From IMG/VR virus record IMGVR_UViG_3300035698_022190, positions 62,001-126,000 of that record: DNA of 64,000 nucleotides; one strand, 5' to 3'. Shown here piece by piece: positions 2,793 to 63,717 of this stretch. Position numbers and translations under genes: made by a program. The first letter of the stretch is position 1. Each line of letters starts with the position of its first letter. Under the pieces are notes generated by a model. That model did no database searches. It was not told where the DNA came from and was given only the letters and a program-made list of their open reading frames with translations.

Positions 2793-3554
2793 ATGCCGCG
2801 ATCGCCAATACATATAGAAAGCCTAAAAAACAGATTTAAGAATTTTTCATTTAACAACACTGTAATTTCGGTGTTGTTAGGTGTCATTTTTATTGGCGGT
2901 ATCTATGCTAATTATAAAATAGGGCAGTTACAAACTGATGTAGCACATTTTCAAAATGAAGCTGCGTCCTCTGATACAATACATCAATTAGACTCCACTA
3001 CAATTAGTAAACTGACTTTAGACGTTAGAAATATCACATCAGATAACGGCGAGCTACAAACTTTTATTGACCGTTTACATGGTGAAATAAGAACACAAGC
3101 TGACCTTATAGCTTCTTTAAATGACAGTGTAGCTAATGTTGAGACAGATGCTGACACAATAATTATAGATGGCGACGGACAAGACATCCGTAGATTTAAT
3201 ATAGCTAAGGGGGCTTTTAAGCTTAGAGGCTATTTTCAATTAGATAGTCCATACGAAATAACATTCGACGAAATGGCGGCCAAGATAGCTCTTGAGCTGA
3301 ACATCGTTCAGCTCCGTAATGGCCAGTGGGAAGCCTTCGTCGATACAAAAAACCCAAGTTTGACGGTCACCGATCTCGTAACAAAAGTTAATCCGTACAA
3401 ACCGGCCTGGTGGCAAAAGATTAATCTAAGCGGCGGGGTATATTTGCAAAGCAATCAGCTTGGCTTAATAGGTGGATTCGGGTACAACAAATTCTTAGGA
3501 TTAATTGGCTATGATCCTCGGGGATACATGCTTGGTGTTCAGTATGTCTTTTAA
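2793..3554 (+). CDS. Membrane-anchored coiled-coil protein, possible lysis accessory (spanin-like)
   Basis: N-terminal TM helix, coiled coil, C-terminal beta-strand pattern ending in F; near endolysin. Confidence 0.55.
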   Translation: MPRSPIHIESLKNRFKNFSFNNTVISVLLGVIFIGGIYANYKIGQLQTDVAHFQNEAASSDTIHQLDSTTISKLTLDVRNITSDNGELQTFIDRLHGEIRTQADLIASLNDSVANVETDADTIIIDGDGQDIRRFNIAKGAFKLRGYFQLDSPYEITFDEMAAKIALELNIVQLRNGQWEAFVDTKNPSLTVTDLVTKVNPYKPAWWQKINLSGGVYLQSNQLGLIGGFGYNKFLGLIGYDPRGYMLGVQYVF

Positions 3555-3562
3555 AAAAAACA

Positions 3563-3785: not shown

Positions 3786-3883
3786 AGGCCCTAGGTGTCA
3801 GATGGGTGACAGTGAGTCTTCAAAACTTTTCCCCCTTGTGTCCAAAGCAAGGTGCGTGGGTTCAATTCCTACAGGGCCTGCCA
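3786..3883 (+). tRNA. Opal suppressor tRNA (anticodon UCA), probably Trp-accepting
   Basis: Acceptor AGGCCCT/AGGGCCT-G-CCA, loop CTTCAAA (TCA at 3820-3822), T-arm GTGGG-TTCAATT-CCTAC, long variable arm. Confidence 0.85.
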
Positions 3884-3900
3884 ATTAACCAAATAGAATC

Positions 3901-4503
3901 ATGTGGAATTTTATACAAAAGATAATAGATGCTTTACTTCGTAAACCCGTTCAGGTACTTGATCCTGTCGAGACAGCTTTTCAGATAATTAATATTACTG
4001 ATCAACTTCCTTGGCACCCAACACGTAAATGGGCAAAAAGGGGTTTATCACAGATACGAAAAGTGGTAGTGCACCAAGCCTATTGTTCTTATACGCGAAC
4101 AACACTACAAGGCATAAATAAATATCATATTACCCCTGGCCCAAATAATCATTTATCTCCAAACGGTGCTCCGCATATTGCGTATCATTATGGAATTATA
4201 GGTGACGGAACAGTATATCAAACAAATTATCTTAGTAATTCAACCTGGCATTCTGCCGGGCATAACACTGCCAGTATTGGCATATTAGTGTTAGGAGATT
4301 TCCATGGTCCCACGAGAGTAGGTGCAGATAAGCATCCTACCCGTAATCAACTACTTAGTCTAGAGAAACTATTAAATTATTTAGTAGAAGATGCTCAGAT
4401 AAGTATTACAAGCCACGACATTTTTGGTCACGCCAACTTTGGTAAAATAAACTGTCCTGGCACTGCAATAACACGCTTTCTCGATGAATACAGGAGAACC
4501 TAA
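3901..4503 (+). CDS. N-acetylmuramoyl-L-alanine amidase (Amidase_2/PGRP-like endolysin)
   Basis: VVVHQ, IAYHY, WHSAGHN..SIGI, GH....KINCPG motifs. Confidence 0.9.
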   Translation: MWNFIQKIIDALLRKPVQVLDPVETAFQIINITDQLPWHPTRKWAKRGLSQIRKVVVHQAYCSYTRTTLQGINKYHITPGPNNHLSPNGAPHIAYHYGIIGDGTVYQTNYLSNSTWHSAGHNTASIGILVLGDFHGPTRVGADKHPTRNQLLSLEKLLNYLVEDAQISITSHDIFGHANFGKINCPGTAITRFLDEYRRT

Positions 4504-5585
4504 TGAGAAAAATAACAAACATGAGTCTAGATGTTGTAGACCATATAATGAATGATAATCTCGTAAAGTTAGCGGAGCTTGTAGAGCCCTTATCGGATGA
4601 AGCTAAAATTGCTTATGTGCCGTCTTATGAAGAACAGCAAGCAGCAAATGAAAAAGATTTCGCTCTTGTTCTGTGAGACCCTAAAGACGGGACAATCCAT
4701 AAATATGCTCTTTACACATCCGAATTAGCGGAACTCAACCTAGCTTTCTTAGCAGATCAAAAAGACAATTTACCAGAAGAAGTAATTAAAATAGCTGCTG
4801 CAAACTTAACTGCCGCTGCAAAAAATTATGACCTTCCTGTACCTGAAGTCTTAAAAGATTATGCATCAGATAAATATATATACAATGTGCTAGATACACG
4901 TAAAATCAGCGAGGTTGGTTTTATAAATAAAACGGCTGCGGTCGTTGAACATAAAAGTTTTGCTTGGGAAGCGGAAAAGAAATACCCGCTTCATGACAGG
5001 CTAAATATAAAGAAAGCTGCTGCTTTCTTTGAAAAAAACCATTATAAAATGGCTATCGCCAAAAAATCAGAGTTTTGTCAAAATGTTATAGAAGCAGCAG
5101 AGGAACAAAACGTACCACTTGACAAGACAGCAATTCATAAATATGCTAGTTTTGACACTATAATTAATCCTGACTTTGTGGACCACATGAAGGTACGCTT
5201 AAGTTATTTAAAAGATAATAAATCAGAGCAGCCACACAAAGATTCTTACAATGAGCTTATTAAACGTGCAGACACAAAACATCAACAACCTGTTGAAGAG
5301 TTAATGCGCAACGTAGAGGAAGCTGACATTGCTTCTGGCTTATTTAATACCTATGGTAAAGGCGTCGCTGATCCATATGAAACTACACTCTCTGTAATTA
5401 AAGTTGCAGAAAGAACAGTGGACGGGATGACAGTATCTTTAGAGCAACTTCGTAATATTCCAGACGGAGAGCTTACATCTCTGATAGGTAATGGCGGAAT
5501 ATCCGAACTAAAGGCTGAAAATGGTCTTGATGTTTTTGAAGCTTTACCCAGACCGGTAAGACAGGATATTTCAAACTTATTCTAA
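4503..5585 (+). CDS. Hypothetical virion/head protein; one TGA (4674) read as Trp
   Basis: ATG at 4503 overlaps the amidase stop and is in frame with 4887..5585; only TGA interrupts; repeated K-x-A motifs. Confidence 0.75.
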
Positions 5586-6925: not shown

Positions 6926-7537
6926 ATGAGCAAAGCCATATATATAATGGAAAAAAATAGCAAGCTTGGTATTTCAATAGGAGCACTTAAAGACTACCCT
7001 AAGGTGTGGCAAAAGCCAGACCCAAACCAAACAACTTTTGATAAATTAAAGCAAACCAATCAAATGCATTCTCCTAAAAAACGTTTAACAGATTTACAAT
7101 TGACACGTCTAGCGCGTAAACAAGATGTTAAACAATATAGACAAGCTAAACTGTTTAAGAACATGGGCACTAAAGCCGGCAATGTGGTAGAAAAAAGTAT
7201 GAAGCTTATTAAATTTGCTGAAAAAAAGAAACCTTATATGTCCTCAGCAGCTCAAGGACTTACAGCGGGAGGGTCCGCAGCCATGGTGGCTACAACAACA
7301 ATGTTTCCTATGGACACTTTTACTACTGGACGACAATCAAAAATGGTTGCCGATCTGGCTGCAGAAGGGTATACATTATCAGCTAAAACTTTCATTAATA
7401 ATCCAAAACTAATACCCAGACTATATCGGGGCCTTCCTCATAAGTTAGGAAAAACTGTTCCAGGAATGGCACTAACTTTTGCAACTTATGAAGGTGTAAA
7501 AAAATTGTTGGACAAAAAATTTACAAGCGAAAAATAA
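6926..7537 (+). CDS. Protein with a single mitochondrial-carrier (SLC25)-like repeat
   Basis: AGGSAAMVATTTMFPMDTF...LYRGL...KTVPGMALTFATYEGVKKLL resembles the Mito_carr repeat signature. Confidence 0.6.
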   Translation: MSKAIYIMEKNSKLGISIGALKDYPKVWQKPDPNQTTFDKLKQTNQMHSPKKRLTDLQLTRLARKQDVKQYRQAKLFKNMGTKAGNVVEKSMKLIKFAEKKKPYMSSAAQGLTAGGSAAMVATTTMFPMDTFTTGRQSKMVADLAAEGYTLSAKTFINNPKLIPRLYRGLPHKLGKTVPGMALTFATYEGVKKLLDKKFTSEK

Positions 7538-7538
7538 A

Positions 7539-8021
7539 ATGGATTTTCAAGATATAATAAAAAGTAAAGAAATTTACGAACCAGAAACACTAGAGATGTT
7601 GTTTCCACAATTGACCTCTCTAGACAGACAAAAGATACAAGTCTTATGGCTACTGCAGAACACCCGTTCGGCCTATGAAGATTTAGATGTCTTTGAAAAT
7701 GTCGTTCTAATTTTAAATGATATTGAGCCTGATCCTATAAAAATGGAAGGATCTACGCCTGAATTTATTTGGAAAGCGTTGGACATGGTTGCAAAAATAC
7801 ATAAAGATGTGGAGCTATCAGATGAAGTGCAAGCATATATTAAGTATATTTTTGATGATCATGGATACAACTTTTATCCGCCTACTTCAGGTTTAGACCA
7901 AACCCCATTGTATGATAGAGTCAAACGGACAGCAGATACCGGCCCATTTCCTTTAAAAGAAGATGCCTTTGGAATACAAGTTATACGATATTTACGTATA
8001 ATGAAATACATCAATAAATAA
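7539..8021 (+). CDS. Hypothetical protein
   Basis: Intact ORF in tight operon. Confidence 0.75.
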   Translation: MDFQDIIKSKEIYEPETLEMLFPQLTSLDRQKIQVLWLLQNTRSAYEDLDVFENVVLILNDIEPDPIKMEGSTPEFIWKALDMVAKIHKDVELSDEVQAYIKYIFDDHGYNFYPPTSGLDQTPLYDRVKRTADTGPFPLKEDAFGIQVIRYLRIMKYINK

Positions 8022-21405: not shown

Positions 21406-24400
21406 ATGGCCAATAATTTACTTCGACATGATGCGCAGAATGCAGCAATTCAACGCGCACTAAAAAAATCTATACAAGAATCTTTCCCTATTGAATCCGG
21501 GGACAAAAAGCTAACGCTTACCAACATTCAAATCCCAAATACCCTTGAGAGTTGAGACTTTCCCAAACAAAAAGAATTTAAGCTAAATCGCAAAAGCTGG
21601 CAAGTCCCTATATATGCGGATATAAAAATTACTGACGTGAATGGTACCCGTATTATTAGTCAAAAGAAAAAGGCTAAAATAGGAAATATCCCCATCTTAA
21701 CAAATAGGTTTACTACAATTATTGATGGTAACGAGTATCAGACAACAAACCAGCTTCGTCGTAAATCTGGAATTTACTCTCATGTAAAACAAAATGGTGA
21801 GCTTGAGAGCGAATTTAATCTTGCCCAGGGTTTTAATTTCAAGATGCAATTAATTCCAACTACACAACTATTTGTGCTTATTTTGGGTAATCGTAAGTAT
21901 CGTTTATGGACCCTATTAAATGTTTTGGGCATGGATGATAAATCTATTGAAAAATTTTGAGGTAGATCTTTACTAGATATAAATAAAAAAGGTGCTTTAA
22001 ACACTGAAGTATCAGAAATGACTTCTATTTTTAAGAAGGTCTACAACAGAGAGCCGAAAGACTATAAAGAAGTATTAGCAAAGCTTAATGAATATTTTAA
22101 TATATATACAAAAGTAGATCCAGAAACCACAAAATTTACATTAGGAGAAAGTTTTGAGCATGTTACTGCCAAGACTCTTTTATCTGCTTCAAAAAAACTA
22201 TTAGCTATAAACAAAGGAACCGCAGAGCCAGATGAGCGTGACAACCTAATCTTTAAAAAACTCTATTCAGTTGAAGATCTGCTAGGTGCCCATTTTGAAA
22301 AACAAATTCCTGTTATTTCACGTAAACTGGCTCGGTCCTTATCACTAAAAGATAGCGTGGGAGAGATAATTAGTTCCAGCACTTTTGGTAAAACCGTTAA
22401 AGAATTCTTTACAACGGGCGATCTATCAGCCACACCACCACAAACAAACCCAGTAACTATTGTAGATGCTTGGCGCAAAACCACACCTATGGGTACGGGT
22501 GGTATACAAAGTCGACACTCCATTACAATGGAATCTCGTAATTTACAACCTACACATTTAGGGTATCTAGACTCATTGGCAACCCCTGAATCTGGACGTG
22601 TTGGTGTCACGGTGGGTCTAGCATCCGAAGTGGAAAAAGAGGGCAACGATATGACTACCCCGGTGTACACGCCGGCTGGTAAAGAAAAAAGATTAAAACC
22701 TCTAGAATTTTATAATGCCAAAGTAGGGTTTCCTGATCAATATAAATTTGAGGGAAAGGCTCTTATGCCTAAGAAAGGAAAAATTAAATCAATGTATAAG
22801 GGGGATCTTGTGGAGCTTGATTCTACCGAAATTGATTATTATCTTCGATCAGCTAAAACGATGTTCTCGTTTGCTACCAATTTAGTTCCCTTCATAGCTA
22901 ACACACAGGGTAATAGAACTTCCATGGGATCTAGAATGATGGTTCAAGCTATGTCCCTGGTCGATAGAGAGGTTCCTTTAGTACAAACTAAACGTTCTGA
23001 TGGTGAAACCTACGAAGATCTTTTAGGTAATTATTTAAACCCTGTTCTTGGTGTAAATGAAAAAGGTAAGCCTTATAAAACAGCTAAGGTAACTAAAATA
23101 GCCAATGACTACGTACATTTAGAAACCCCGGGTGGTATTAAATTAAAGCGTGGTTTATATAAAAATTTTCCACTGAACCAAGACGGTTTTTTAAATTCAA
23201 CTTCTTTAGTAAAAGTAGGAGACTCTGTCACTACTTATCAACCTTTAGCTGAGAATAATTATTCTCGTGGTAAAACACTTGCATTAGGTAAAAATTTAGT
23301 TGTAGCATATATGCCATACAAAGGATATAATTATGAGGATGGGGCCGTTATTACAGAATCTGCTGCCCAGAAATTATCGCACCAGATGATACATAAGGCC
23401 AACATCTTCTTTAGCCCTAAACTTACAAACTTTAATATTAAGAAATTCTTGGCCTGGTATCCAGACACTGTCAAGCAAGATAATTTAGCTAAACTGACGG
23501 AGGAAGGGCTTCCTAAAGTGGGCCAAATTTTTCAACCTGGGGAGTATTTGGCTGCCTATCTCGTTGAAAAAGATATGGATGATATAGATAGAGCTTTAAA
23601 AAAATTAGACAAACATACGTTCAGTCAATATGCTAAAAAACTTGTTGAATGGGATGAAGATGAGCCTGGGACAGTTATTGATGTAAAAAAAGTTGGACGA
23701 AATATAGACATATATATAAAAGCAGTTCATCCTTTTAAAGAAGGTGACAAACTTTCAGGAAGGTTCGGGAATAAAAATATTGTAACCAAAATTATTCCTG
23801 ACGATGTTGCCCCACATAGGAAAGATGGCACTCCTGTGGAAATTATGCTGAACCCACATGGGGTCCCATCACGTATGAATATTGGGCAGCTTCTAGAGAC
23901 AGCTGCTGGCAAAATCGCTGTAAAAACAGGTAAGCCTTATATCGTTGATAATTTTTCCGACCCTAATGACGATACATCAAATAGAGTATATGATGAGCTA
24001 AAAAAACACGGCCTTGAAGCAGATGAAAAATTAACAGATGGGACAACCGGAGAGGCTTTTGATAATAAAATTTTTGTAGGAAATCAATACTTCCTTAAGC
24101 TGCGCCACATTGTTAAAAAGAAACAAGGGGTCCATAGTTATGGTAGCTATGATGTAAATGAGCTTCCTGTTGGTAGAGGGGCGCAAAAGACAGGTACTAT
24201 GGAAACCTATGCTTATTTAGCACATGGAGCTAAAGCAAACTTAGCTGAAATGTCAACCGTTAAAGGACGCTCTAATGAAGAGTACTGGCGTAATCTTCAA
24301 CTAGGGTTGCCGCCCGTCCCGTCAAACAAAAATTTTATTTTTGATAAAATGTTAGCCCATTTAAAGGGGGCTGGTATTAATATTTCAAAGAAAGGAAATA

Positions 24401-27400
24401 AATTAAGAATTTTTCCTTTGTCAGATAAAGAAGCAATCAAAATGTCTAATGGCGAAATTAAGGATCCCGGAGCCTTTCTGGTAGGTAAGAATTTAGCTAC
24501 TAGAAAGAATGGACTATTTGATCCAGAAATTACTGGAGGCTTAGCAGGAACACATTGGTCACATATTAAATTAACAACAGCCATACCAAACCCAATGTAT
24601 TCAGACGCTATAATGAAGATATTAGATTTAACCGAAGCACAATTAAATGATACCATTGCTGGGAAATTTAAGGTTAATGGTAAAACAGGTGCTCCCGCCA
24701 TTGTTGCTGCTTTAAAAGAAGTAAATGTAAAAACAGAGATTACTAGCTTAAAGAAAGAATTAAAAACGGCTCCTCCTACAAATGTGAATAAACTAAACAA
24801 AAGAATTAGATATTTGCAGACTTTAGATGAGTTGAAATTAGGAGCTGTAGACGCATATACGATGAAAGTTGTGCCGGTATTACCGCCTGCATTTAGGCCC
24901 ATATATCCTTTACAGACGGGCGATCTAATGATCAGTGATTTAAATAAACATTATCGTGATATTGGTACAATTAATATTGCGTTGAAAGGAGCGAAGGAAG
25001 ATTTAAGTGCTTCGGAAATGGCGGAGGCTACAACCTCTCTTTATAATTCAGTAAAAGCTTTACAAGGTTTTATTGATCCAATAAATTATTCAAGTAAAAA
25101 ATACAAAGGTATTATAAAAGAATTGTCCGGTAAGCAAGCTCTAATTCAAGGGGCAGCTTGGGCAAAACGTCAAGACATTAGTGCACGGTCAACTATTACT
25201 GTGGAACCAAGTTTAGGTCTTAACCAACTAGGATTACCTACAGATATGGCCTATAAAATGTTTAAACCTTTTGTTATACAAGATTTAAAAACCCAGGGTT
25301 TAAAGGCCTCCACTGCTTTAAAAGAGTACCAAGATAAAACAAACTTGGCTTTTAACTCATTAAGGAACGTAGTAAAAAATAGACCTATAATTCTAAATCG
25401 AGCACCATCGCTCCATAAGCACTCTGTTCAAGCTTTTTGGCCCCAATTAATTACCGGCAAAGCTATCCAAATGAACCCTTTAATTATGAAAGGATTTAAT
25501 GCGGACTTTGATGGAGATACTATGTCAATTATGACACCCGTTAGTGCTTTAGCTGTAGAAGAAGCTAAGGGAATGCTCCCGAGTAAAATTCTTTTTAAAC
25601 ACGGAGATAATTCTCTTGTTCCTACAATAGACCAGGATTATTTATATGGTTTGCATGCGCTAAGCCAAGTTGAAAAAGTATCTGCCAAGAAATTTTCAAC
25701 TATAGCAGAAGCGAAAAAATCGGGAATTTCTTGAACGACACAATTTAAATTAAAAAATAAAAATATGACTATAGGTCAATACTATTTAAATGATAAATTG
25801 CCTCCATCTTTAAAGGACTTTTCCAGAATTCTCAATAAAAAGTCTGTGCGTGATATATTAACGAAGGTCGGAAAAGATCATAAGGGTTACTTTGTTGGGC
25901 TAATTAATTCTTGGAAAGATTTGGGCGGTTTCTATGCTTATAAAGTAGGGAATACCATATCATTAACTGATTTTGCAAACAGTAAGTCTTATCGTGACGA
26001 CATTATTAAGAAAGAAATGCCAGCTATTAATAAATTAAAAGGTAAGGCACGCATAGATGCTCTTAATCGCTTAACAAAAGATGTACAAAAAGCACAAGAC
26101 AAAACTTTTAAGGGCAAAAATAATATGTATAAAATGTTGATAGCTGGATCATTTTCAAAGCCTGATTCAGTGCGACAAATTTTATCTATGCCGGGTGTTT
26201 TAAATGACTTATACGGCAAACCGATTTCAATTCCTGTAACTAAAAGTTATGGAGAGGGTCTTGATTCAGCAGGCTATTTTACATCTTTATATGCGGTTCG
26301 AAGCGGAACTGTTGATAGATCAGTAAATACACAAGATACGGGGGCTTTAAATAAAACATTATTAAATGTGACCCGAAGGTTATTAATTACAACAGAAGAT
26401 TGTGCAACTCGAAAAGGTTTAGATCTTCCTGTGAATGGTAAAAACGTCTTAGATCGATTTATACTGGAAACAATTCCGGGAGTTGTAAAACGTAACCAAT
26501 TAGTAGATTCACAGACATTACTGAAATTAAAAGCAAAGGGAATAGTTACCGTAAAAGTTCGTAGCCCACTTACATGTGAAGCTGTCGAAGGCATTTGCCA
26601 ACATTGCTATGGTTTATTACCAAACGGTCAGTTACCTTCTGTAGGGACAAACGTTGGTGTGTTGGATGGACAAGCATTGACTGAGTCATTTACCCAGAAT
26701 GTTATGCGTACCTTCCACACCGGCGGTACTGCTCTAGGTGGGGGCGGGGTTACTGAGGGCTTCCCTCGAATGGAACAGTTATTAAAAGTTCCAGAAAAAC
26801 TTAGCCATAAAGCTACTTTAAGCACTGTTAAAGGAATAGTAAAAACTATTTCAAAGAATTTAACAGGTGGATATAACCTTCGTATTGAGGGATATGGTAC
26901 TATAAATGATAAAGATTTTGTTATTCCCCCAGGACGTTCCCCTATTGTAAGTATTGGGGACAAAGTAGAGCCTGGAGATCCATTAAGCGATGGCGTAATT
27001 AAGCCACAAGAATTGGGAGCTTTGACAACACACTTAGAGGCACAAAATTATCTTGTAGATGAAGCTTCTCAAGTAATGGGAGGAGGTTTCTTCCGTAAGA
27101 CATTTGAAACAGTTATTCGTGGTATCTCAGATAATGCTGTTGTGACTGAGGCTCCGGATAGAAGTGGTTTTTTACGTGGAGATAAAACAACAAAAAGCTA
27201 TATAGATAAATTAAATAGAGATCGAAAAAAAGAGAAATTAGAGCCCATTAAGTATAACTCATATTTTAAATCAATTGACACATTAAATACAGACTCAGAT
27301 GATTGGCTTACAAAAATAACTTCTAACAGAATCAAAGCCGCTCTAATGACAGGAGCAGCTAAAGGTCAATATGCAAACTTAAAGGGAAAAGACCCTATAC

Positions 27401-27465
27401 CCGCATATATCTACGGAGAAAACTTTGGTAAACAAATCATGCCAGATAAAGGAGAATTTTACTAA
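21406..27465 (+). CDS. Single-polypeptide fused beta-beta' DNA-directed RNA polymerase (~2019 aa); 3 TGA read as Trp
   Basis: One frame with TGA at 21553, 21958 and 25732; TPESGRVG, GYNYEDG, GDKLSGRFGNK, NPHGVPSRMNIGQ, LNRAPSLH, NADFDGD, RSPLTC..ICQHCYG, MRTFHTGG. Confidence 0.93.
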
Positions 27466-33487: not shown

Positions 33488-33541
33488 CTATTTGTTTCCT
33501 TGTTTTATATTGTTTAATACATATAACTCTTTTTATATGTG

Positions 33542-33943
33542 TGGAGCTGCGGGTATCGAAACCCGGTCCGAAATAAAGTCCCATAGAACCTTAATTACAA
33601 GTATTATATCTCGATATAAGGAGCTCGGCGTTCGAGATCAAAACGTTTGTGAGCTAATACTAGTTTCATTTTTGAATTGGGAAATTGTAGCTAAACACCA
33701 ATTATGTCTACATGGTTAGACGTTATAGACCCCGCCAAGCTTTCATGTTTCTCGGTAAGCTTTACGTCACATTAGCTAACCCGCGTAAGCGAAGTTAGAA
33801 TGACCGACTTGCCCTTGAGCAAGTAAGTTCACTGGTATGTTTTTGCCAGTTATTGTTTGTTTTTGAATATGTTTAACGAGAGAAATTCATTTCTCGACTT
33901 GTAGTTTTATCTTCTCTTATCCCGTCGAATCCAATTCAGCCCC
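33542..33943 (-). ncRNA. ssrA: tmRNA
   Basis: 5' GGGGCTGAATTGGATTCGAC, 3' T-arm and GCTCCA, ATAACT-GGC resume site with tag ORF. Confidence 0.93.
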
Positions 33944-36144: not shown

Positions 36145-36219
36145 TGGAAGCCCCGAGTGGTGTCGAACCACTGTTGCCAGGATCAAAACCTGGTGTCATG
36201 CCGTTAGACCACGGGGCCA
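36145..36219 (-). tRNA. tRNA-Gln(UUG)
   Basis: Cloverleaf, loop TTTTGAT, CCA. Confidence 0.9.
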
Positions 36220-36665: not shown

Positions 36666-37022
36666 TTAGAAATTAAAATAAGGTTTTCTAATAGACCCTG
36701 GCAACAGATTTTTAATATTTTCTGCGCCTACAGGATTTAAAGAATGTATAACTATTTCCGCCGAATACCCATCTACACCCTTCTCTTTTAAATGTTTGGC
36801 AAAAGTTGATCCAGTATTTAAATTTAAAGTACTGACCATTACTTTTCCGCCAAGATCATGGTCGAGATAGTATTTATCAAATGGAGCATTCTCATCGTGC
36901 AGTTTTTTCGCTTCTTCTATTTCTTCAGCAAAAAAAAGTTTTGCATCCGGATATTGTGCAGAGAGTTTTGCTACAAAACCTCTAATCCTGTATATGTTGT
37001 CTTCCAATATGAATATTTTCAT
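36666..37022 (-). CDS. Receiver-like (cyclic-phosphate-processing) domain protein
   Basis: IFILED, LDHDLG, IHSLNPVGA. Confidence 0.75.
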   Translation of the reverse strand: MKIFILEDNIYRIRGFVAKLSAQYPDAKLFFAEEIEEAKKLHDENAPFDKYYLDHDLGGKVMVSTLNLNTGSTFAKHLKEKGVDGYSAEIVIHSLNPVGAENIKNLLPGSIRKPYFNF

Positions 37023-38861: not shown

Positions 38862-38934
38862 TGCACCTGGAGGGCTACGATCCCCCTACTCTCCGGTTAA
38901 AAGCCGGAAGCTCTACCAATTGAGCTACAGGTGC
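38862..38934 (-). tRNA. tRNA-Lys(UUU)
   Basis: Loop CTTTTAA. Confidence 0.9.
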
Positions 38935-40416: not shown

Positions 40417-40971
40417 TTATTTTGTGCGACGATTAGCAACTCTACTAGCAACCCAACCTTCTGGCTTAATAAGCCCTTCAAAGCCGTGTGCTTTTATAGT
40501 TCCTAATACTCCCGCTACAACTGAATTTGATAAGTATTTTTTATCTCTGTTTAGATCTGCATGTAGAGTATCTATTTCATGCACACCTAAACCTACCTTA
40601 GCTAATTCAGGGTTTAACCACATCGCTACTTTAATACTATCATATGCTTCTTCAATTAAGCGTGTGCGATTATCTAATCTTTTGCCGCCTATGTGTTGTT
40701 TTTTATATATTTTATAATAAACACGTCCGCCAGCCCCTACTCGCCATAAAGCTACAGCGGTTACAAACCGTGTACTATATTTATGTACTTGACTATCAGA
40801 ACCAACAATAATTCGTATTTCGCGACCTTCTGCAGTTGCCGAAATATCCTTAAACATTTCTTCAGGCAAGTTCTCAACAACTGTATTGTGTAGATCCATA
40901 CGCTTCCATACCCACCCTGGGGAATCCTGCGTCATTTTAGCTACATAATTGTTCTCTAGTTGATTTGTCAT
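40417..40971 (-). CDS. RNase H-like YkuK/DUF458 protein
   Basis: IIVGSDSQ, RLIEEA, HADLN, IKPEGWVASRVA. Confidence 0.8.
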   Translation of the reverse strand: MTNQLENNYVAKMTQDSPGWVWKRMDLHNTVVENLPEEMFKDISATAEGREIRIIVGSDSQVHKYSTRFVTAVALWRVGAGGRVYYKIYKKQHIGGKRLDNRTRLIEEAYDSIKVAMWLNPELAKVGLGVHEIDTLHADLNRDKKYLSNSVVAGVLGTIKAHGFEGLIKPEGWVASRVANRRTK

Positions 40972-41275: not shown

Positions 41276-41485
41276 CTAAATAACTATTACGTTATTAGCA
41301 GCTTCACCTTTTTCAGTTTGTACGACGTCAAATTCAACTTTTTCGTTTTCTTTCAATGATTTAAAACCATCTGCGATAATTGAATTGTGGTGTACAAAGA
41401 GGTCATTGCCTTCATCACGAGTGATAAAGCCAAAACCTTTACTGTCGTTGAACCATTTTACTGTTCCAACTTCTTTTTTTGCCAT
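41276..41485 (-). CDS. Cold-shock protein (CspA family)
   Basis: [20 protein letters not shown]; start at MAKK. Confidence 0.93.
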
Positions 41486-41547
41486 CTTTGTTTTTCCTAC
41501 TTGTTTATTGTTAACTACCTGGTAAACTTTCGTAGTTTCCAGGGTTG

Positions 41548-41629
41548 CGGAAGATATAGGGATCAAACCTATGGAGGTGTTACCCTCACGGGTTAGCAAC
41601 CCGCTGCATTATCACTCTGCCAATCTTCC
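41548..41629 (-). tRNA. tRNA-Ser(GCU)
   Basis: Loop TTGCTAA, long variable arm. Confidence 0.88.
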
Positions 41630-44829: not shown

Positions 44830-44902
44830 TGGAATCAGTAGGTCACGATCCTACAATCTTCGGCTTAAGAGGCCGCTGCATTACCAATTTTGCTATGATT
44901 CC
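44830..44902 (-). tRNA. tRNA-Lys(CUU)
   Basis: Loop CTCTTAA. Confidence 0.85.
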
Positions 44903-45220: not shown

Positions 45221-45438
45221 TAATATTCCATAGCCAGGATTCTGTTCTATCCTATGATTTCTCTGTTGGCATCTACCTTTGCATTATAGAGCTGCTTTCC
45301 CTCTAGCTATTTTGAATTGCTCCCTGGGAAGTGCTGACGATTGTTATTCGAGTTCCTTTTAACAATCTCCTTCCGTTAGCAGTGGAGTCCTGAGCTTCCT
45401 CTCATCCCTTTCGGGGTAGAGCCATAGGTCGAATATTA
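45221..45438 (-). ncRNA. rnpB: Miniature RNase P RNA
   Basis: P1 TAATATTC/GAATATTA; GAGGAAGCTCAGGACT and ACAGAATCCTGGCTAT form P4; GGAGCAA and AGAGAAAT conserved motifs. Confidence 0.8.
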
Positions 45439-45443
45439 TTTTG

Positions 45444-45514
45444 TAGCCGATAGGGGTATTGATCCCCTGTTGTCGGGATGAAAGCCCGGTATCCTACCAT
45501 TAGATGAATCGGCC
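45444..45514 (-). tRNA. tRNA-Glu(UUC)
   Basis: Loop CTTTCAT. Confidence 0.88.
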
Positions 45515-45601: not shown

Positions 45602-45657
45602 AATGTATGTCCACTTGTCAAATAACGAAAAAACTGGATGAATACCCAGTCATTGGA

Positions 45658-45686
45658 AATATAGATAATAAAAATTTAAATGTCAA
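45658..45686 (-). promoter_or_regulatory. sigma70 promoter TTGACA-N17-TATATT heading the tRNA/ncRNA cluster
   Basis: Perfect -35; ~55 nt upstream of tRNA-Pro. Confidence 0.75.
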
Positions 45687-59336: not shown

Positions 59337-59867
59337 TTATAAGTTATATAGTCTAGCCATTGCCTGTAATGCCTCGGCATTTCCTTTAGCATCATTTACA
59401 GGATTATGGTCATGCTTTGTTTTTCTAAATTTTCGCTTCCACTCACTATTGGATCTTAAATTTTTAACTAGTCCGCAGTATAAATCTCCAATGCGTCTGG
59501 CTGAAAAGCCAAATGGGTTTTTTTTATCTTTAATAAATTCATCAAAATAGTAGTTCATCCATTGCCAGTCAAATGCCGGGTTATCGCTCACAAGTGTTGC
59601 ACGATCCCCAACAGTTTCTCTAATCCAGCTGTCAAAGCCGTACATAGTAACTACAGGCTCATCAAATTGTTCGTGTTCCTCTCTTGTAAATCCAGAAATT
59701 GCTAAAGCTTCGAGACTATATTCTTGAGTAATAGGTTTGGTAGTTCCATAAAATGTTTTAGATAAATCTGTTACAGATACTGCCCCAAAACACACCATGC
59801 TACCTGTTGCTGGGGAAGCATTGTCTGCCTCTACATCCACGACTATCCAATTTTTCATATTTGTCAT
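59337..59867 (-). CDS. DEDDh 3'-5' exonuclease
   Basis: VDVEAD, NPAFDW, HNPVNDA. Confidence 0.85.
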   Translation of the reverse strand: MTNMKNWIVVDVEADNASPATGSMVCFGAVSVTDLSKTFYGTTKPITQEYSLEALAISGFTREEHEQFDEPVVTMYGFDSWIRETVGDRATLVSDNPAFDWQWMNYYFDEFIKDKKNPFGFSARRIGDLYCGLVKNLRSNSEWKRKFRKTKHDHNPVNDAKGNAEALQAMARLYNL

Positions 59868-62532: not shown

Positions 62533-63717
62533 TTAACCCTTTATTACTGCTAAGGGCCTTAATTTTGTGTGTATTCTAACAAGATCTTTTTGATTTTTCA
62601 TAACCTCATTAATATCTTTATATGCACTTGGTGCCTCATCTAGCCTACTTGCGTCTAAATCATGGACAATATATTGATCGTCAAGAGTTTTTCGCTCTTG
62701 TGCAAGATTAAGCGTTTGATTAGCTACACGTCTTCCCATTTTTCTTCCTGCACCATGTGAGCAGCTTTGAAAGGAGTCTCTGTTTCCAAGGCCTTCTACT
62801 ATATATGAGTTTGTACCCATCGATCCGGGGATAATTCCTAGTTCCCCGTCACGCGCCCTCGTAGCACCTTTACGATGTACAAGTACGTTTGCACCAAAGT
62901 GATTCTCCCACGCTGCGTAGTTGTGTGCTATATTTATTGTATGGCTTCCACAGTTAACGGTGCATGTACCTTTCATTACTCCCTGAAAAGCTTCTAGCAC
63001 ACGTGTCATCATTAGTTCTCTATTTGCCAAAGCAAAATCTACACAATATTGCATTTCTTCTAGGTAGGCTTTTCCTTCTTTTGTGTCTACAGGTAAAAAA
63101 GCCAAGTCAAAAGGTTTTGGCACACTAGTGTACCACTTTACGTTTTCAGCTTTTGCTATTTTATTGTAATGATCGGCAACTTGCTTTCCAAGATTGCGAC
63201 TCCCAGAATGTATCATAATCCAAATATGGTTCTGTTCATCTGATTGTACTTCTATGAAGTGATTACCGCCCCCCAGGGTTCCTAATTGTAATAATGCTTT
63301 ACCATAATTTCGCGCCACAACACTATCTGAGTCAGCCAATGAAACACTCTCTGGCATCATTTTCTCGTCTTGTGGTTTCTCATGCCAATTAAATCCTACA
63401 GGTACCAGCTCTTTTATTTTCTTTGTAAGAGACTTTAACATGCCTGTTGACACTTGACTAGCTAAATTTAAATTTGTTTTGTAGGCTAGCATTCCGCAGC
63501 CTATATCGACCCCCACGGCATTTGGTACTACAACCTTTTGGGTAGCCATTACGCCACCAATAGGCATACCGAAGCCGCAATGCACATCCGGCATTAAAGC
63601 TATGTGCTTATATGCGAATGGCAATTGCGATAGGTTTTGAGCCTGTGACATTGCTCCCGGCTCTATCTCCGGTGCCCAAGATTTTATTGGGACTCTTCCT
63701 TCTGTAAATACTCTCAT
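62533..63717 (-). CDS. rtcB: RNA-splicing/repair ligase RtcB
   Basis: MPDVH.G.G.PIG, VGVDIGCG, LGTLGGGNHFIE, HSGSR, HRKGAT, SHGAGR, DEAPSAYK. Confidence 0.95.
   Translation of the reverse strand: MRVFTEGRVPIKSWAPEIEPGAMSQAQNLSQLPFAYKHIALMPDVHCGFGMPIGGVMATQKVVVPNAVGVDIGCGMLAYKTNLNLASQVSTGMLKSLTKKIKELVPVGFNWHEKPQDEKMMPESVSLADSDSVVARNYGKALLQLGTLGGGNHFIEVQSDEQNHIWIMIHSGSRNLGKQVADHYNKIAKAENVKWYTSVPKPFDLAFLPVDTKEGKAYLEEMQYCVDFALANRELMMTRVLEAFQGVMKGTCTVNCGSHTINIAHNYAAWENHFGANVLVHRKGATRARDGELGIIPGSMGTNSYIVEGLGNRDSFQSCSHGAGRKMGRRVANQTLNLAQERKTLDDQYIVHDLDASRLDEAPSAYKDINEVMKNQKDLVRIHTKLRPLAVIKG

Follow-up and report, generated by a model that had tools for sequence, protein, structure and literature searches.

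The region examined here is a 64,000-nucleotide stretch (hereafter the window) of the 210-kb IMG/VR contig IMGVR_UViG_3300035698_022190, which is part of a huge phage genome. The window carries split or fused multisubunit RNA polymerase genes of phage type, genes for RtcB, NAPRTase and ThyX, PHROG matches to phage families, a tmRNA, and about 27 tRNA genes that all lie on the minus strand between 36 and 45.6 kb, while its closest cultured relatives are only about 33% identical in the polymerase. Within the tRNA array, on the same strand, an RNA of 224 nt occupies 45441-45218. It begins 2 nt after a tRNA-Glu(UUC) at 45514-45444, which was found with the Rfam tRNA model (52.7 bits) but missed by ARAGORN, and ends 6 nt before a tRNA-Ala(UGC) at 45211-45134, which was predicted by ARAGORN. 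A promoter-like site, TTGACA-17-TATATT at 45686-45658, lies upstream of tRNA-Pro, tRNA-Glu, the RNA and tRNA-Ala; it matches 11 of 12 consensus positions, although this is a consensus match only.

To establish what this RNA is, we scanned the window against Rfam. The scan at the curated gathering scores reported no RNase P, since the gathering score of the bacterial class A model, RF00010, is 100 bits. A local scan by E-value, however, aligned RF00010 from model position 1 to 367 at 45440-45215 on the minus strand, with 48.4 bits and an E-value of 5.9e-14, and with the approximately 110 positions of the specificity (S) domain collapsed to about 15 nt. RF00010 is the best-scoring member of the RNase P clan for this sequence. 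For comparison, ordinary bacterial RNase P RNAs score 156-287 bits in the same tool. The region is not coding, in that no open reading frame longer than 27 amino acids lies wholly inside it. The observation made in the first-pass annotation, of an RNase P RNA of about 218 nt at 45221-45438 with catalytic-domain landmarks, a variant P4 and only a short hairpin region in place of the S-domain, is thus confirmed: its boundaries are within 3 nt at each end and miss only the outermost pairs of P1, and the P4 strands it named are exactly there, GAGGAAGCUCAGG at 45401-45389 and CCUGGCU at 45238-45232.

Relatives on viral and metagenome contigs

To investigate whether the RNA is an isolated case, we scanned for patterns built on the P4/P5 core with a short S-region. 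In IMG/VR these recovered the loci that we denote L001, L058, L059, L061, L062 and L064, together with longer reduced forms in L065-L069, and a single metagenome scan gave 49 more loci. A covariance model built from 12 hand-checked sequences (R1) then recovered 54 places in these loci; it scores the RNA of the window at 191.8 bits, as the only hit in the window. Unexpectedly, R1 also found about 17 real members among 55 loci that had been fetched only by the 15-mer AACAGAATCCTGGCT, hits that could otherwise have been taken as chance matches, and one of these, L049, is on a 469,617-bp viral contig. In total, 30 distinct full-length sequences of 184-292 nt and 40-65% GC, from viral and metagenome contigs, the viral ones of 26-470 kb, were aligned. 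Relatives range from 46 to 132 bits against RF00010. A pattern with an S-region of only 0-29 nt returned no viral hit, so no member with the S-arm fully deleted was seen. A distant-mode blastn search of 50,697 GenBank phage records with the RNAs of the window, L058 and L067 likewise found nothing, and no cultured or annotated relative is thus detectable in this way.

The same pattern was applied to one genome from each of 185,579 bacterial and archaeal species and hit 21 loci. Of the 20 that were run through Rfam, 18 are normal type A RNAs of 332-487 nt that matched by chance, and two (L129 and L134) have no RNase P. The remaining locus, L139, which was scanned with R1 only, is the only mini form; it is a 4.2-kb contig that is 100% identical to the phage locus L086, that is, a mis-binned phage contig.

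Predicted fold and its conservation

Numbering the RNA such that position i corresponds to 45442 - i, the alignments allow the following fold to be assigned. P1 is formed by positions 1-11 and 214-224 (45441-45431 with 45228-45218); all 11 pairs show changes on both sides across the 30 sequences, and 88.7% of cells are paired. P2 pairs CCUAUGG at 45428-45422 (14-20) with UCAUAGG at 45257-45251 (185-191), is 99.4% paired and covaries at 5 of 6 core pairs. P3 is a hairpin at 45421-45401 (21-41), 91.9% paired with 5 covarying pairs, whose length varies between relatives from a stem with a UACG tetraloop to a 40-nt hairpin. It is followed at 45401-45389 by CR I, which consists of GAGGAA and the 5' strand of P4, AGC-U-CAGG. 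P4 (46-48 and 50-53 with 204-210) is formed with CCUGGCU as A-U, G-C, C-G, a bulged U, C-G, A-U, G-C and G-C, with the bulged U at position 49 (45393); relative to the Rfam consensus (AAG-U-CCGG / CCGGCUU), three pairs are changed on both sides. P4 is 99.5% paired with 3 covarying pairs, and GAGGAA and the bulged U are invariant in the 30 sequences, in agreement with the GAGGAAAG and ACAGAA flanks that characterize this helix in RF00010. On the 3' side, J2/4 (ACAGAA) and CR V lie at 45250-45232, where ACAGAA is invariant and ACAGAAUCC is nearly invariant, and the sequences that were fetched only by the 3' strand of P4 all carry a complementary 5' strand.

P5 pairs CUCC at 45387-45384 (55-58) with GGAG at 45323-45320 (119-122); it is 100% paired and covaries at 3 of 4 pairs, occurring in the enlarged set as CAUC/GAUG, CUCA/UGAG, CUGG/CCAG, CUUG/CAAG and CACC/GGUG. 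The P6 pseudoknot pairs CUGCU at 45382-45378 (60-64) with AGCAG at 45296-45292 (146-150) in the loop of P17, and is 96-100% paired with covariation of all 5 pairs, for example UUAC/GUAA, CGACUG/CAGUCG and CAAGAAG/CUUCUUG. J5/15, CAA at 45319-45317 (123-125), belongs to CR IV and holds the counterpart of E. coli A248; GCAA is invariant in all 30 sequences, while the P5 strand that precedes it covaries with its partner. The P15-P16-P17 module spans 45316-45271. P15 pairs UUC at 45316-45314 (126-128) with GAU at 45273-45271 (169-171), and is 92.2% paired with all 3 pairs covarying (CAC/GUG, CCC/GGG, GCU/AGU and others). It is followed by J15/16 (AAAAUAG), by P16, GC/GC (135-136 with 160-161), which is weak at 53% paired, by P17, UAGAG/CUCUA (137-141 with 151-155), and by J16/15 with the GGU motif at 45277-45275 (165-167). 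GGU is invariant in the alignments of 12 and 15 sequences and corresponds to the 3'-CCA-binding loop of the Rfam consensus, CGGGUa. P6 and the P15-P16-P17 module with its GGU internal loop are the signature of type A, type B having P15.1 and P5.1 instead. Finally, 45270-45258 holds GC and a linker equivalent to J18/2 (AGAGAAAU), which aligns to CuAGAugAAUG in Rfam. P18 is absent from the window and from most mini members, although hairpin inserts at this position in the longer relatives L092, L076 and L084 are probably P18. The helix names agree with the alignments that Rfam gives of intermediate-sized relatives and of a normal RNase P RNA.

Three alternative assignments were ruled out by the alignments. 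A CUG/CAG extension of P5 is really the 5' strand of P6; UAGAG/CUCUA, which can be read as P15 with a GG loop, is P17, whose loop holds the 3' strand of P6; and an apparent small P18, GCA...UGC, is P16, the GGU loop and P15. The initial Rfam alignment of that segment is likewise unreliable. Folding of the single sequence by minimum free energy was uninformative, since it gave z-scores of -2.6 for the minus and -4.0 for the plus strand, and therefore cannot assign the strand, and it cannot show the pseudoknots. The strand rests instead on the covariance model hits and on the closing G.U pair of P2, which is kept in 28 of 30 sequences and would be C.A on the other strand.

Over the full alignment of 30 sequences, 91.9% of cells form standard pairs, compared to 64.3% in column shuffles (0 of 500 as high as observed) and 34-42% when the structure is slid by 1-3 columns, and 51 of 63 pairs change on both sides. 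Although the shuffle control ignores phylogeny, the slid controls and the many distinct pair types per column argue that the signal is real. Moreover, P4 and P6, the two pseudoknots, were not part of the covariance model, and the alignment was thus not fitted to them. One could speculate that the RNA is a decaying pseudogene, a host fragment picked up by the phage or a product of mis-assembly, and decay does occur in this family, since a truncated, degraded second copy lies next to the full copy in L001 and four related loci. We consider this very unlikely, however, because the compensatory substitutions in the helices, including the two pseudoknots, show purifying selection on the fold, the same architecture recurs on independent contigs of 40-65% GC, and no cellular genome among those scanned carries this form.

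Of the S-domain, only a single arm of 48 nt remains, at 45374-45327 (68-115). It consists of a 5-bp stem, GGAAG/CUUCC (45374-45370 with 45331-45327), which is 97.1% paired with 4 covarying pairs, the dinucleotide GA (45369-45368), a hairpin that is variable among the relatives (45367-45339) and the 7-nt bulge GUCAGCA (45338-45332). In 28 relatives the bulge is 6-7 nt; its consensus is G-N-U-U-G-Y-A, with an invariant last A and, in most members, a U five from the end, where the window has C. The order of elements in Rfam is P10/P11, J11/12 (ACAGAAAacAgA, CR II), P12, J12/13 (GUGAAAa, CR III), P13, P14 and the return strand of P11. We therefore read the arm as P10/11 plus P12, with CR II reduced to GA and a CR III-like bulge retained, while P7-P9, P13 and P14 are gone. 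In support of this reading, an additional P7 encloses exactly the same motif in L076 and L068, and L067, from a phage with 28 tRNAs, still has P7-P9 and passes the Rfam threshold at 131.8 bits, so that the phage RNAs form a graded reduction series. A kink-turn reading of the internal loop of the arm was rejected, because the strand with GA lacks the 3-nt bulge.

Genomic context and inferred function

In most loci the RNA lies on the same strand as, and inside or beside, a tRNA array. The next tRNA starts 1-7 nt downstream in 14 loci, and in 7 loci (8 counting the window) the previous tRNA ends within about 7 nt upstream. To search for a protein partner, we compared 40 open reading frames of the window with Pfam, including the ten small basic or array-adjacent ones where an rnpA would be expected, and clustered the open reading frames from 24 loci all against all. 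No RnpA domain was found among these 40 reading frames, which come from only 64 kb of a 210-kb genome, and the only recurring neighbours are HNH homing endonucleases and an unannotated multi-copy reading frame.

What the analysis itself demonstrates is homology over the full length to bacterial type A RNase P RNA, a fold (P1-P6, P15-P17 and the short S-arm) maintained by compensatory changes across at least 30 lineages, intact universally conserved core sequences (GAGGAA, the bulged U in P4, GCAA and ACAGAA) and GGU motif, and a position within the tRNA genes, on the same strand; transcription, processing, protein binding and catalysis are all inferred from sequence and context. On this basis we consider it likely that the RNA is a functional catalytic subunit of RNase P, derived from the bacterial type A lineage and miniaturised. 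In the simplest reading, it would be transcribed as one unit of the polycistronic tRNA array and cut out by the tRNA-processing machinery itself, with RNase P cleavage at the 5' end of tRNA-Ala generating its 3' end and 3' processing of tRNA-Glu its 5' end. It would fold into a type A catalytic domain and bind the RnpA of the host, bacterial RNase P RNAs and proteins being interchangeable, and would cleave the 5' leaders of the phage pre-tRNAs and the pre-tmRNA, either adding RNase P capacity or making the phage independent of host rnpB expression during infection. Only 7 of the 26 window tRNAs encode CCA, and use of the GGU motif would thus need prior CCA addition. More speculatively, the remaining S-arm could still measure or stack on the tRNA elbow, as modelled for the single T-loop of archaeal type T RNase P (PMC13462272), although the bulge position that would start a T-loop is U in most members but C in the window, which makes this step weakest for this very sequence.

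Two other roles were considered. The RNA could be catalytically dead or weak and act as a decoy or regulator that titrates host RnpA or pre-tRNAs and shuts down host tRNA maturation, as might be suggested by the reduced S-domain, the score below threshold and the fact that phages commonly encode mimics. This seems unlikely, since a protein decoy would not need the bulged U, the ACAGAA and GCAA core, the P6 pseudoknot or the GGU motif to stay invariant or compensated over 30 lineages, and since inhibition of tRNA processing from within the phage's own tRNA array would be self-defeating. Alternatively, it could be a working ribozyme whose main substrates are not tRNAs but, for example, the phage tmRNA, GOLLD-type RNAs, or phage mRNAs or leaders, made accessible by relaxed recognition without a full S-domain. 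Bacterial RNase P processes tmRNA and some phage RNAs (PMC11143913), the window has a tmRNA, and L001 has a GOLLD RNA in the same array. However, a tRNA array is the one constant companion across loci, whereas tmRNA and GOLLD were each noticed in only one locus (the window and L001, respectively, without a census), and such substrates would most likely be additional rather than alternative. We thus regard this possibility as improbable as well.

The interpretation offered in the first-pass annotation is only partly supported: the identification as an RNase P RNA with catalytic-domain landmarks, a variant but well-paired P4 and most of the S-domain missing holds, but the suggestion that S-domain loss may match the non-canonical T-loops of this phage is not supported. 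The T-loops are indeed unusual, in that 10 of 26 tRNAs in the window have A54, 8 of them as a swapped A54:U58 pair, and the close relative L086 shares this in 5 of 11, while the bulge of the window also deviates from the family consensus. However, at least 18 loci with the same mini RNA have only canonical U54:A58 T-loops among the parsed tRNAs, namely L058 (26 tRNAs), L059 (27), L064 (14), L061 (12), L049 (14), L009 (10), L032 (10), L041, L088, L118, L099, L101, L062, L079, L006, L018, L026 and L027. Even in the window 16 of 26 tRNAs are canonical, and the odd ones keep C56, the base that forms the outer layer of the tRNA elbow. The reduction is shared by the whole family, thus predating the T-loop changes of this phage, and does not track them, and the S-domain is not simply lost, since a conserved arm with a CR III-like bulge remains. 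Specialisation of the RNA for A54-type tRNAs therefore appears unlikely, and the T-loop explanation is rejected as a general cause.

Comparison with known RNase P RNAs

RNase P RNA is treated as a universal cellular housekeeping ribozyme, and we found no published description of a virus-encoded one in a literature search that included a 2024 review of RNase P, the 2020 survey of huge phages and the study of theta ribozymes in phage tRNA 3' processing, although this search covered only open-access papers and bioRxiv, and an earlier report cannot be excluded. It is about as likely as not that large phages encode their own minimal RNase P ribozyme, a so far undescribed, phage-specific class of bacterial-type RNA of 184-224 nt that has converged on the same solution as archaeal type T, a full catalytic domain plus one S-arm with a single CR III-like elbow-reading bulge, that is transcribed and matured as a unit of the tRNA array and that makes phage tRNA 5' maturation partly independent of host rnpB. 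If active, it would be among the smallest natural bacterial-lineage RNase P RNAs and, to our knowledge, the first virus-encoded RNase P. A conserved, phage-specific miniature form would extend the translation-related functions carried by huge phages (tRNAs, tmRNA, synthetases) to tRNA 5' processing. It also offers a natural test of how little S-domain a bacterial-type RNase P needs, would represent a second, independent evolutionary route to the single T-loop design proposed for archaeal type T, and provides compact natural scaffolds, down to about 184 nt, for structural and engineering studies. In addition, it shows that the Rfam gathering score hides these genes in phage and metagenome annotation.

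Compared to bacterial type A RNAs such as E. coli M1 RNA and T. maritima P RNA, the architecture and core sequences of the catalytic domain are the same, including P1-P5, P4 with its bulged U, the P6 pseudoknot with the P17 loop, P15-P16-P17 with the GGU internal loop, and CR I, CR IV and CR V. The mini forms are however 184-224 nt rather than about 330-490 nt, lack P7, P8, P9, P13, P14 and P18, have CR II reduced to GA and a P15 of only 3 bp, and are encoded by phages inside tRNA arrays rather than as a solitary cellular rnpB gene. The RNA of the window falls short of RF00010 in its score, its S-domain and P18, while the features of the catalytic domain other than P18 are present, P16 being weak. 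Archaeal type T RNA, the closest analogue, is similarly about 200 nt, with a conventional catalytic domain that includes P6 and P15-17 and an S-domain reduced to a single stem with one bulge, modelled as a T-loop in type T and only possibly T-loop-like in the phage RNAs, with CR II lost and the CR III side kept; type T RNase P works with its S-domain reduced in this way to a hairpin (PMC13462272). The lineage differs, as the phage RNAs align to the bacterial type A model and not an archaeal one and the context is a bacteriophage, and type T works with four archaeal proteins (Pop5, Rpp30, Rpp29 and L7Ae), whereas a bacterial-type RNA would be expected to use a single RnpA; the two reductions are independent, that is, convergent.

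Engineered type A catalytic domains without an S-domain (Eco CP RPR) cleave substrates, depend on a P6-type interaction for efficient cleavage, and do not need P18, which normally docks on P8, once the S-domain is absent (PMC5839562). This fits with what the phage RNAs keep (P6) and drop (P8 and P18), although the former are laboratory truncations with reduced efficiency, while the phage RNAs are natural, keep a conserved S-arm and are under selection. The diverged or reduced RNase P RNAs of CPR bacteria and Mycoplasma fermentans also fall below Rfam thresholds and lack P12, P13, P14 or P18 (PMC8172020), but these are cellular, sole-copy genes that keep most of the S-domain, whereas the phage form keeps a P12-like hairpin and loses P7-P9. 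Finally, theta (HDV-like) ribozymes are likewise encoded by phages beside their tRNA genes and have been proposed to make the phage less dependent on host tRNA-processing RNases (PMC10879173); they are small self-cleaving ribozymes proposed to act in cis on 3' trailers, whereas the RNA described here is an RNase P homologue that would act in trans on 5' leaders.

tRNA genes and other RNAs of the array

Among the 26 tRNAs that could be parsed on the minus strand between positions 36145 and 45601 of the window, 10 carry A54 in the T-loop, for example those at 38862-38934, 44830-44902 and 45444-45514. In eight of these, the U54:A58 reverse-Hoogsteen pair is replaced by a swapped A54:U58 (in loops such as AUCGUAG and AUCGUGA), while C56 is kept. 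The same is seen in 5 of 11 tRNAs of L086, a phage locus closely related to the window, and sporadically in L001, a viral locus that also encodes a mini RNase P RNA, as well as in the loci L012, L007 and L093. One could speculate that the change serves to avoid m5U54 modification or to evade a tRNA-targeting defence, although these are only two among the possibilities. The tRNA-Glu(UUC) directly upstream of the RNase P RNA (45444-45514, minus strand) is called by Rfam at 52.7 bits but is missed by ARAGORN. Conversely, ARAGORN calls a tRNA-SeC(tca) at 3786-3883, on the opposite (plus) strand and far from the array, which the Rfam gathering scan does not confirm.

A phage-encoded tmRNA (33539-33943, minus strand; 108.5 bits with Rfam, and with the tag peptide GKNIPVNLLAQGQVGHSNFAYAG according to ARAGORN) lies at the start of the same minus-strand RNA gene region, and is another expected substrate of RNase P. 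In L001, a GOLLD RNA at 7430-7900 on the minus strand (191.6 bits, above the gathering score), with a tRNA embedded at 7753-7824, sits in the same phage tRNA array as a mini RNase P RNA. In the window, a promoter-like TTGACA-17-TATATT site is followed within 10 nt by an 8-bp hairpin with a T-run (45651-45632; the two elements together span 45632-45686, minus strand), before the first tRNA of this block. While it is feasible that this arrangement represents a leader or an attenuator, it could also be a chance match.

Protein-coding genes near the array and elsewhere in the window

RNA repair and processing genes are interleaved with, or lie near, the tRNA array, all on the minus strand (36666-37022, 40417-40971, 41276-41599, 59337-59867 and 62533-63717): a cREC_REC cyclic-phosphate receiver domain, a PF04308 RNaseH-like domain, a cold-shock domain protein, an Rv2179c-like 3'-5' exoribonuclease and an RtcB ligase. 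This suggests a phage tRNA maintenance module. On the plus strand, a single 1238-aa ORF (22018-25734) combines Rpb2-type (beta) and Rpb1-type (beta') domains, and the next ORF (25765-27465) continues with Rpb1 domain 5. This constitutes a fused and split multisubunit RNA polymerase arrangement, which is only ~33% identical to those of Salmonella phage Arash and Vibrio phage D69.

Truncated second copies, insertion and co-occurrence among related loci

In L001, a truncated 5' copy (~155 nt; 3407-3560, minus strand) of a second RNase P RNA abuts the full copy, and the same is found in the related loci L080, L095, L100 and L108. It has P1-P3, a different P4 5' strand, a degraded GGAGCAA and P15-P17, and it breaks off before GGU. 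It looks like a decayed tandem duplicate. In L086, an HNH homing endonuclease (4385-4906, plus strand) is inserted directly downstream of the RNase P RNA, relative to the syntenic window, and homologues occur in the loci L061, L064, L099 and L111. The 4.2-kb contig L139 (CAYQKA010000073.1), assigned to an 'uncultured Planctomycetia' MAG, is 100% identical to the phage locus L086, so that a phage fragment has apparently been mis-binned into a bacterial MAG. Finally, a second, different mini RNase P RNA (171.8 bits, 60% GC, P5 = CAUC/GAUG), found on L041 (IMGVR_UViG_3300035698_028977), comes from the same metagenome sample as the contig of the window, and at least two phage lineages with this RNA therefore co-occur there.
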